In this document: positions 523-3,884 of the stretch, one piece after another
How the letters are laid out: every line of letters begins with the position of its first letter
Position numbering within the stretch: the stretch's first letter is position 1
Assembly: GCA_001179505.1 (NCBI GenBank)
Contig: CDMY01000193.1
Coordinates: 1-64,000 of the forward strand
Origin: Vitrella brassicaformis CCMP3155
Lineage: Eukaryota; Protista; Chromerida
DNA: 64,000 nucleotides
Direction: 5' to 3'
The notes under the pieces: model-generated
What the model saw: the letters and a program-made list of their open reading frames with translations, nothing else
Told to the model about the DNA's origin: nothing
Databases searched by the model: none
Made by a program: the position numbers and the translations under genes

Positions 523-593
523 ACACCGTTAGTATAGCGGTAGAATAAGCGGTTCCCATCCGCTTGGCCCGGGTTCAACTCCCGGACGGTGTA
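523..593 (+). tRNA. tRNA-Gly-CCC: tRNA-Gly (anticodon CCC)
   Basis: Hand-folded 71-nt cloverleaf: acceptor ACACCGT/ACGGTGT, D arm GTAT-AGCGGTA-GAAT, anticodon stem AGCGG/CCGCT with loop TT-CCC-AT (anticodon 555-557), T arm CCGGG-TTCAACT-CCCGG, discriminator A; T5 tract 28 nt downstream. Confidence 0.93.
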
Positions 594-621
594 TGTATGA
601 GTAGATCGCCTTTGCAGCCGG

Positions 622-626
622 TTTTT
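622..626 (+). terminator. Pol III terminator (T5) for tRNA-Gly-CCC; mirrored at 852-856 on the minus strand
   Basis: TTTTT 28 nt after the tRNA 3' end in both arms. Confidence 0.7.
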
Positions 627-884
627 GACCACCGCACCGTTTGCCGTCCCTCCTGCCGCCAGGGCGGCGGATGGTGGCGATGAAATCAAACAGAAGACAG
701 GAATAGGCTGCGAGGTCATGTCACGGTCATACATACACCGTCCGGGAGTGACCGTGACATGACCTCGCAGCCTATTCCTGTCTTCTGTTTGATTTCATCG
801 CCACCATCCGCCGCCCTGGCGGCAGGAGGGACGGCAAACGGTGCGGTGGTCAAAAACCGGCTGCAAAGGCGATCTACTCATACA

Positions 885-955
885 TACACCGTCCGGGAGT
901 CGAACCCGGGCCAAATGAATGGAAATCATTTATTCTACCGCTATACTAACGGTGT
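885..955 (-). tRNA. tRNA-Gly-TCC: tRNA-Gly (anticodon TCC)
   Basis: Reverse complement reads ACACCGT TA GTAT AGCGGTA GAAT A AATGA TT-TCC-AT TCATT TGGC CCGGG TTCGACT CCCGG ACGGTGT A, a full 71-nt cloverleaf with B box GGTTCGACTCC. Confidence 0.93.
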
Positions 956-1108
956 GAAGTTGCATGTTTCGGGCAGGTGATGACATTGAGGGTTGTGAGG
1001 TCTCTTCACAGATTCACCGATAGACGTTTGACGACAGGTCTGTCTATGCATGAATGTGTGTATGTAATGTATATATCTACAGATCGAGTCTTCCCGCCAA
1101 ATCACTGG

Positions 1109-3884
1109 CTACGCACACGGGACCGTCCTCTGTGAGTCATCATCTCTCACAGTCACACCACTGCTGCCGGCCCCATCCTCGCCATTATCCTCATCACCCG
1201 CATCGCCCATCGGCTGGTCCGCCACACCGCCACTACCGTCCCCACCATCTGCTGCCGCACCGGGCCCGTCGTCAATCACCTCCACATCTGGACACACAGA
1301 CACACAGAGAGCCAGATGGGAAGAGCCTCGTGTGTGTGTCGCTTGTTTGCCGAGACTGACTGACCTCTGTAGTGGTAGGCCGACGAACGTGGCGACGCCG
1401 GCACCGTCCGGGCGGGCGACGCGGGCTCTGTGGCATCCTCATCGCCGCCACCCGCCCCTCTGATGTCCCTCTCTGCCCCATCGCCCCCCTCCATCATCTG
1501 GTCGTTCGGCGGCGCACTCTCAGCAGCAACAGCAGCATATGGATGGGCCGGCACCGGGCTGAGATCACCACCGCTCCTTGCCCGGCGTGTTCCACTGCCG
1601 TTGCTGTCTGCCGGGGGTGAGTTGGAGTGTATCATGGCGAGAAGGTCACGGTCCTGTGATTGCGAGTCGGTGGGGGTGATGGCTGGCGGGCGCGGAGCGT
1701 CGCTGCCAGACGGAGCGGCCTCGTTTGAAGACGCAGCAGCAGCTGCTGCTGCTTTTGCGGGCTTCTCTTTCCTGAACCATCGCAGCGCAATGCAGAGGAG
1801 CACCATTGCCGCCATGCCACGTGCGTCGGTGGTGTGCATGCTTGGGCCGCTTGCCTGAGTAGGTCATGGAACTGCAGCGAGGGGTCGGTGCACGGGGCTT
1901 GTGGGTCATTTCGGTATTCCCACGGGTCTTCCCACGGGTCATATCTGGCCTGGTCGGGCAGCGCCACCTTGCCCACGGGCCGCACCTCACACGGCCCCAT
2001 GAACTCCACCAGCTCGTGCACCTCCTCGTACGATGAATGCATCGCCCACATGACGTGCTGAACACACACACACGAACAAAGAAAGAAACAAACGCACACA
2101 TCTGGCCTGGCTTCTCTAGTCGACCTCGCTGTCTGTCTGCCTGTGCCCTGTGTGAGGTGTACCCATGTAGAGTTTCCATCTGGGCCTGTCTGGAGGATCG
2201 GCTGGTGCTGGTTTGTGTCCATGGAGGAGAGGCATGTCCTGGTGTACCAGCGAGTCGAGGCCACGATCCACACAGAAGCACGGTCACCGGACTGCCTGAT
2301 GGCGGCCTTGGACTCGCTCGGATGCTTGCCCACCACGATCCGCGGGACGTCCCGGTCAGTTCCCTGGTGGATGAGATGGGCGGAGAAAAAGACAGGAAGG
2401 AAGCAGGTAGTGTAGACAGGTCATCCGTCAATAGCGACACCGATGTGCACGGGGGGGTGGGTGGGCTCCTACCTACCGTGACGTGTTTCAGACGCAGGTG
2501 TGGGTTTGCGATCTTAAGATCGTTGAAGAATTGCCGACTTCGCACGCCAAGCTCGCTACCGCCATTGCTTTGCAGCCACTTGTCCAGCCGCTCTATGAGC
2601 TCCTCGCTGCCCAGCCACCCCTGCAGATTCAATAGCAACCATCGAGAGAGGCTTTGGCCTGCGGTGAGTCCATCCGTCAGTCCATCCGGTCTTGCGTACC
2701 GAAATGAAGGAGATGTAGTCGTCCTTGTAGATGCTGAAGAGTGCCTCTAGCTGACGCTTGCTCTCATCCTGTGTGCCAGTCAGATCAGCAACGCAGGCAG
2801 GACAGCGAGGGGTGCAGTGGCCGCTGGTGGGCTGCATGTTTGTGTGTGGGTGTGTCACGCCTTCCTTGCCTTGGTGATGAACTTGGCGCACTGGCGGTCT
2901 GCAAACGTGACGTCTACATACATGATATCCACCTGTGGCCACACACACATCCACGCCAGCCATGCCACCGCCGACGGCCGTGTGCACGTGAGTGATTCGT
3001 CATTGTTTGTGGGTGGCTGGCTGACCTTCTCCCTCGCCTCTTGAAGGACTGGGTGCGACAGCAGCCCAGCGTAGAAGCGGAAGTCGCCCGTGTGCATGTG
3101 ATATCGCCCGCCCGCTAATCGCAGCACCACCCTGTAGCACACGACACAGCACAGCACAGAGCACAGCACAGCACACGCATCCGGCAAAGAAAACCGCAAG
3201 GATGCCGCCGCTTCGCTTGCTTGGTGTGCTGTGCGTCCCTGCCTGCCTGCCTACATTGCTGATCCAGCCATGTGGTTGGCATCGATGAAACACATCTGAG
3301 TGACACACACGACACCCACACAGGCAGAGCTCGAGCAGGTACGCCTGGCTTTGTTCCGAGTGCCGCGGCTGACCTCAACGATCCCAGCGATTGGATCCTG
3401 GATTTCCGTCCACACTACGTGCTCTTCCACACTCACGATCTCCTGACACACACAGATGAGATGCGTCCACGCTTCACACCGCTGACGACAAACAAACAGG
3501 CCGCCTCGTCGTTTCTTGCTTGCTCACCACTCTATCCTTGGGCACAGCCAGAAGGTCCTCGTGGGTGATGAAGTCGAACGTCTTTTTTGTGCAGTATATC
3601 TTGCCATCCTGCCGCTCACAGAATGCACGATTCAGCCCTCTATAGTGATCTGCATACGCGACACAACACAACAAAAGACAGACATACGCAGATTAAAGAG
3701 TATGCACCGCACCGCATCCGCCCATCACATCCTGCATCTCTGTGTCCGTCCGTCCGTCCGTCCGTCTGTCTGTACCAGAATGGAAGTGTGTCAGGATGAA
3801 TGAGGGTACGCCGAAGGTGTCATCCACCCGTACGAATCTGTCGACGAAGATGAGTGTGTTGGGAAACGTGGCATTCGTGCACAT
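1109..3884 (-). CDS. SNM1/PSO2/Artemis-family metallo-beta-lactamase (beta-CASP) DNA-repair nuclease, multi-exon; 3' end uncertain (a last exon may lie near 1018-1045)
   Basis: Spliced motifs IFVDRF, ILTHFH-SDHYRGL (HxHxDH across an intron), FIDANHMAGSAM, HMHTGDFRF, MYVDVTF, HSSYEEVHELVEF; low-complexity C-terminal tail. Confidence 0.88.

Follow-up and report, generated by a model that had tools for sequence, protein, structure and literature searches.

Two nuclear tRNA-Gly genes of Vitrella brassicaformis CCMP3155, one with the anticodon CCC and the other with UCC, converge within a palindrome of 433 bp whose arms differ inside the tRNAs alone. The reading that I prefer is that an old convergent pair of isoacceptors received a recent templated inverted insertion by a template switch; it is put forward tentatively, with a probability of roughly 45%. 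The window, which here denotes the whole stretch of DNA that was analysed, covers scaffold C193 from its start to 64 kb; the assembly comprises 72,700,666 bp and 1064 scaffolds. The features that carry the argument are collected in Table 1.

Table 1. Features of the tRNA-Gly palindrome, with positions counted from the first letter of the window.
Feature	Position	Strand	Remarks
tRNA-Gly(CCC) gene	523-593	+	ARAGORN; RF00005, 54.8 bits; 71 nt, without encoded CCA
Trailer of the CCC gene, 136 nt	594-729	+	matches reverse-complemented 749-884 at 136/136 positions; this locus only
T5 run at which RNA polymerase III likely terminates on the CCC gene	622-626	+	at +29 to +33
Central spacer, 19 nt	730-748		TACA, then the tRNA 3' end in reverse complement (its first 15 nt); exact copy of 881-899
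Inverted trailer copy T'	749-884	-	perfect copy of 594-729; carries the UCC terminator
T5 run, terminator of the UCC gene	852-856 (A5 on + strand)	-	at +29 to +33
23-nt block	878-900		identical to 727-749; 578-600 is its reverse complement
tRNA-Gly(UCC) gene	885-955	-	ARAGORN; RF00005, 59 bits; 71 nt

ARAGORN returned exactly two tRNA genes for the 64-kb window, Gly(ccc) and Gly(tcc), and both matched the Rfam family RF00005 over their full length (71/71) and above its gathering score of 29 bits. In the RF00005 alignment all pairs of tRNA-Gly(CCC) were standard except the D-stem pair 12-23, and the sole non-standard pair of tRNA-Gly(UCC) was found at the same D-stem position. The anticodon stem and the T loop read AGCGG/CCGCT and TTCAACT in the CCC gene, and AATGA/TCATT and TTCGACT in the UCC gene. 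The B boxes of the pair, read from the same alignment, were GGTTCAACTCC / GGTTCGACTCC, together with the A-box-like TAGTATAGCGG. Both trailers begin with TGTA, and neither gene encodes CCA. Judged from their sequences, both are intact nuclear type 2 Pol III tRNA-Gly genes with a cloverleaf and an NCC anticodon.

Further NCC tRNAs were searched for by BLAST with the tRNA body, with a T-arm pattern and with general NCC patterns. The trailer and the tRNA body matched the 72.7-Mb assembly at the Gly locus alone, and beyond the Gly pair the T-arm pattern retrieved only two tRNA-Asp genes from the assembly. The other NCC tRNAs found were a Gly(UCC) on C467, a tRNA-dense contig that was taken for the plastid genome, and two dispersed nuclear Gly(GCC) genes. 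The CCC and UCC genes are single-copy; to the question raised by the sequence-only reading, whether GGA and GGG have other decoders, the assembly offered no further nuclear gene. Most of the nuclear tRNA genes that were sampled are dispersed and were found once, with Asp(GTC), Tyr(GTA) and Gly(GCC) occurring at two loci each. Exact-protein look-ups with two open reading frames that cross the arms gave no record, and pattern scans of metagenomes for relatives gave no match.

A repeat search delimited the palindrome as an inverted repeat with arms of 207 nt each (523-729 and 749-955), 96% complementary and separated by 19 nt. Arm-to-arm alignment showed that the acceptor stem, D arm, variable loop and T stem are all identical between the two Gly genes, and that outside the anticodon arm the palindrome arms differ at 1 of 190 positions. 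Everything that had been noticed from the letters alone was thereby confirmed, including identical acceptor and D arms, T arms one loop base apart, and an identical trailer of 136 bp, which was said to run about 100 bp past the T5 run and in fact continues for 103 bp beyond it with every one of its bases matching. The 19-nt spacer had also been recognised as a copy of 881-899; this copy is exact, and the identity widens to 23 nt (727-749 = 878-900) before it stops one base short of the T-loop mismatch. At the other end of the arms the similarity goes no further than tRNA nucleotide 1, and 20 nt of sequence upstream of it show no relationship.

Chance cannot account for this palindrome, since the region folded as single-stranded DNA reaches -276 kcal/mol, far below the -74 +/- 4 kcal/mol of shuffled sequences (z = -46), and since all other long inverted repeats of the window are simple sequence. 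No Rfam family scored above threshold in the trailer at 594-729. Sub-threshold matches to isrG and to miRNA families were obtained there and were rejected, as they only reflect the long hairpin. Self-complementarity of the spacer, which served as a test of ancient palindromy, scored 18 against 12.8 +/- 3 for shuffled sequences, which is not significant (z ~1.7).

The divergence of the two genes is concentrated in the anticodon arm. They differ at 8 of 71 positions, seven of them within the 17-nt anticodon arm and one in the T loop (A57 in the CCC gene, G57 in the UCC gene). The seven comprise three stem pairs that are altered on both sides, and so compensated, and C34 versus T34 in the anticodon; the alignment thus bears out the earlier description of arms that differ at 7 of 17 positions, with three compensated stem pairs and CCC against TCC. 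All eight differences are transitions, and in seven of them a G or C in the CCC gene faces an A or T in the UCC gene. Were eight differences to fall at random, at least seven would land in the 17-nt arm with a hypergeometric P of ~1e-4. An arm from an unrelated donor would show transitions only with a probability of ~(1/3)^7, if the three alternative bases are equally likely at each differing position.

No donor for either anticodon arm was found in the assembly when both 17-mers were searched with up to two mismatches. There were 18 matches outside the Gly locus, a tRNA was present in 0 of the 16 loci inspected, and the matches of the UCC arm elsewhere were ATTCC-like simple sequence. Because the changes are transitions only and the genome offers no donor, the arms are read as an old divergence in place and not as a swapped module. 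The paired transitions would fit a stepwise compensation in place, from G-C through G-U to A-U, that followed a C34/U34 shift. If the arms are old, then the 136 identical and presumably neutral bases of the trailers call for either a recent event or ongoing homogenisation.

Other tRNA pairs of the genome provided a baseline. The two Gly(GCC) genes, both at positions 1485-1556 of their respective loci (L094 on C246 and L095 on C338), have bodies that are 100% identical and flanks that are unrelated except for TCCATAA (7 nt) upstream and CTT (3 nt) downstream. It follows that similarity starting at nucleotide 1 is normal for tRNA paralogues in Vitrella, and that body identity gives no date for a duplication. 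The sequence-only reading had stressed that the similarity of the Gly pair begins exactly at nucleotide 1; this is true of the pair but unremarkable, as the Gly(GCC) and Ser pairs behave alike. The Ser pair, tRNA-Ser(CGA)/(AGA), lies on C98 (locus L039) at 1022-1102 (-) and 1571-1652 (+), head-to-head and 468 nt apart, and is 85% identical with similarity within the tRNA body only. Here, too, three anticodon-stem pairs are altered on both sides, and the six stem differences are all transitions. In the Ala(UGC)/(CGC) pair the anticodon stems are identical. With the anticodon arm left out, 1/54 positions differ in the Gly pair, versus ~5/64 in the Ser pair and 6/56 in the Ala pair, and the identity of other isoacceptor pairs ranges from 54% to 91%. 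As a side observation, Ser(CGA)/(AGA) constitutes a second adjacent inverted isoacceptor pair in the Vitrella genome.

Under the preferred reading of an old pair and a recent insertion, one Gly gene would have undergone a local inverted duplication in an older step, and a C34/U34 shift of the anticodon would have turned the two copies into sister isoacceptors. Three anticodon-stem pairs would have been re-tuned by paired transitions via G-U intermediates, with purifying selection freezing the remaining tRNA body and the 5' flanks diverging fully. The ancestor would have consisted of tRNA1, a spacer of ~140 nt (594-733 of the window) and the inverted tRNA2, which corresponds to positions 1-733 of the window joined to 885-end. 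During replication or break repair, the growing strand may have passed through tRNA1 and the spacer and 15-16 nt into the inverted tRNA2. With 1 nt of microhomology, it would then have jumped to the complementary strand at the end of the spacer and copied back along the spacer. The switched strand would then have entered the 3' end of tRNA1 and rejoined the original template through the 23-nt block that is common to both tRNAs. The outcome would be a net insertion of 151 nt, by which the spacer would have become perfectly palindromic and the UCC gene would have acquired a trailer and a T5 terminator identical to those of the CCC gene. The 19-nt centre would be the footprint of the event, i.e. 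the last ancestral stretch copied before the polymerase jumped, and the insertion would be young, because the trailers show zero differences.

I simulated this event on strings, and the hypothetical ancestor with one out-and-back switch gave the present window base for base, the return point being free to fall anywhere in the 23-nt homology. One switch would account for the perfect trailers, for the 19-nt centre and for the end of the identity one base before the T-loop mismatch. The match is qualified by the ancestor being constructed, and any sequence of the form 'X plus inverted copy' decomposes likewise. The model also asks for terminal inverted repeats of 7 nt in the ancestral spacer (TGTATGA...TCATACA), with a chance of ~6e-5 (4^-7); this demand is partly excused because several trailers in the Vitrella genome begin with TGT, and that of Ile(AAT) opens with TGTATGT. 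Furthermore, the uniformity of the Gly bodies (1/54) leans towards homogenisation, with numbers that are too small for significance. The fold-back or template switch that had been proposed from the sequence survives in part: a switch does seem to be recorded at the palindrome centre, but copying of the inter-tRNA spacer alone fits more simply than copying of the whole unit.

The main competitor, which is unlikely but still credible, is an old palindrome held identical by recurrent arm-to-arm gene conversion that proceeds from the centre, with the 19 nt as a separate templated patch. Tracts that overwrite one of the single-copy anticodon arms would be removed by selection, and heteroduplex extension would be blocked by the clustered mismatches in these arms. 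The trailers agree at 136/136 positions although the 5' flanks are unrelated, and outside the anticodon arm the Gly bodies are more uniform than those of the Ser or Ala pairs, both of which would suit conversion. Each gene is moreover the sole nuclear copy of its anticodon, so that selection against its loss is to be expected, at least for UCC. However, conversion needs at least two kinds of event, i.e. ongoing conversion and a patch at the centre, where the template switch needs one, and the 26 identical nt that lie 5' of the anticodon arm demand separate tracts, or just constraint. The locus itself contains no direct evidence of conversion. In yeast and bacteria a palindrome that is long, near-perfect and short-spaced is as a rule unstable, and given this instability the long-lived palindrome that conversion requires is not expected. 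It is improbable that tRNA and trailer were recently duplicated together, as one unit, by a fold-back or a template switch; in this case one anticodon arm would have been remodelled or patched afterwards, by 7 substitutions or a short conversion patch, to create a new isoacceptor. Such a duplication would suit arms that differ at only 1/190 positions beyond the anticodon arm, and in eukaryotes duplicated tRNA genes are known to change isoacceptor by mutation of the anticodon (PMC3923123). Yet its boundary must fall exactly on tRNA nucleotide 1, three switches are needed for the 19-nt centre, and 7 changes (three of them paired) must have been fixed while 136 neutral bases gained none. A patch, in turn, finds no donor in the genome, a foreign arm is not expected to give all transitions, and this pattern also arose in the Ser pair, which has no common flanks. 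The same three points speak against the swapped or spared anticodon arm of the sequence-only reading, and its visible mechanism of isoacceptor switching reduces to, at most, the preserved product of an older anticodon shift.

An assembly artefact was also considered, in which there is one real trailer and the inverted copy was made by scaffolding, gap closing or chimeric reads. The assembly was built from short reads with velvet at k=75, followed by SSPACE, GapFiller and IMAGE (PMC4501334). The locus lies 523 bp from the start of the scaffold and beside a dispersed repeat, the perfect arms of 152 nt are longer than k=75, and the 23-nt direct repeat around the second trailer could be a gap-closure scar. 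Against this, the palindrome stops short of the contig end and its flanks are unmirrored, the left one being the end of the dispersed repeat plus 151 nt of unique DNA, and the structured differences between the arms yield two valid tRNAs. The k-mers of the 748|749 junction could hardly be invented by a de Bruijn graph, so that corrected reads presumably carry them, and no repeat in the proposed ancestor reaches k=75, which leaves nothing to confuse velvet. The probability of an artefact is accordingly put low. Two inverted copies of a tRNA-headed, SINE-like retroposon or of a dicistronic tRNA-Gly-snoRNA unit would agree with a similarity that begins at tRNA nucleotide 1 and includes the 3' body, and tRNA-Gly-snoRNA dicistrons exist in plants; both are highly improbable here. 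An RNA-mediated SINE-like unit had been envisaged from the sequence and is rejected for this assembly: the trailer occurs at the Gly locus only, one locus in 72.7 Mb, and a Pol III transcript would stop at the T5 run at +29, which leaves the last 103 nt of the shared block outside it. There is neither a target-site duplication (direct repeats at 523/955) nor a tail, whether A-rich or of simple repeats. A dicistron of the plant type was likewise rejected, as only 28 nt precede the T5 run and Rfam, run in E-value mode, gave no snoRNA match in 594-884.

The preferred template switch has close counterparts in the literature. Four-point template switches, some of which make perfect hairpins, are documented (PMC5453318; PMC8794818); they resemble the Gly locus in that a stretch is replaced or extended in one event by the reverse complement of its neighbour to give a perfect hairpin, with departure by minimal microhomology and return by homology. 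The Gly locus is unlike these cases in that its return homology stems from two convergent tRNA genes and its ancestral state is an inferred one. The events described by Loytynoja and Goldman in 2017 and by Monttinen and Loytynoja in 2022 are reportedly shorter than the 136-152 nt that would have been copied here.

For the older step, the anticodon shifts of Rogers and Griffiths-Jones 2014 (PMC3923123) offer a likeness, as they and the Gly pair alike involve neighbouring paralogues with a near-identical body and C versus U at base 34. Unlike those shifts, the Gly pair has three altered anticodon-stem pairs as well. Anticodon-dependent tuning of the anticodon stem-loop, the 'extended anticodon', is said to have been described by Yarus in 1982. 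The differences of the Gly and Ser isoacceptors are concentrated in the anticodon stem, as that idea would have it; unlike them, the Ala(UGC)/(CGC) stems are identical, so it is no rule in Vitrella. Primate Y-chromosome palindromes and plastid inverted repeats, which are homogenised by arm-to-arm gene conversion, share with the Gly palindrome their near-identical inverted arms and short unique spacer. However, they span kilobases whereas the Gly palindrome spans hundreds of bases, and nothing at the Gly locus demonstrates conversion.

Most likely, the Gly locus is a tidy case of known processes and not a new mechanism for changing anticodons. One locus would then record both the birth of an isoacceptor, by local inverted duplication and compensatory retuning of the stem, and a large template-switch insertion that was guided by the homology of convergent tRNA genes. 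If the structure is real, a near-perfect palindrome of 433 bp with a 19-nt centre is tolerated between two probably essential nuclear genes, which is relevant to palindrome instability and to the evolution of tRNA gene sets in apicomplexan relatives.

A more far-reaching and rather doubtful proposition is that the palindrome is a standing device, in which recurrent hairpin-mediated conversion co-evolves the bodies, trailers and terminators and selection keeps the two anticodon-arm modules separate. In a speculative variant, the insertion was kept because it supplied the UCC gene with a missing Pol III terminator. This rationale stays speculation because a nearby run of at least four T is usual for the nuclear tRNA genes without being universal: 20 of the 28 examined had one no more than 60 nt downstream. 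If the standing device or the terminator variant were true, inverted pairing would be a route for managing sister isoacceptors with few tRNA copies. The inverted Ser(CGA)/(AGA) pair would then represent, under the standing-device reading, a second and non-palindromic stage of the same route.

Some minor observations concern the surroundings of this and other tRNA genes. Positions 1-371 of the window belong to a dispersed repeat, of which they form the end; among 179 candidates at least 40 copies were scored, 91-100% identical and many of them at scaffold ends; scaffold C193 starts at window position 1 because of this repeat. Among seven copies the similarity halts exactly at 371. The stretch 53-371 opens with TG and closes with CA and is preceded by the purine run GAGAGGGGG at 44-52. 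By these features, an LTR retrotransposon seems to end here with its polypurine tract and 3' LTR, 151 bp upstream of tRNA-Gly(CCC). Targeting of tRNA genes by this repeat was considered and rejected, as 0 of 8 other copies had a tRNA within 1.5 kb. At the start of scaffold C432 (locus L040, positions 1-176) lies a different dispersed repeat, present in at least 40 copies that are 97-99% identical; it ends ~535 bp upstream of a tRNA-Thr(CGT) at 706-779. At least four nuclear tRNA loci (on C193, C432, C884 and C98) lie within ~1.1 kb of a scaffold end, versus ~1.4 expected. That repeats cluster near tRNA genes is a weak hint, confounded by the tendency of assemblies to break at repeats. The tRNA-dense contigs C467 (tRNA matches at 635-70698), C14, C166, C991, C1054 and C847 appear to be plastid or leftover bacterial sequence in the nuclear assembly, and on C166 an Ile(GAT)-Ala(TGC) arrangement looks like the spacer of an rRNA operon.
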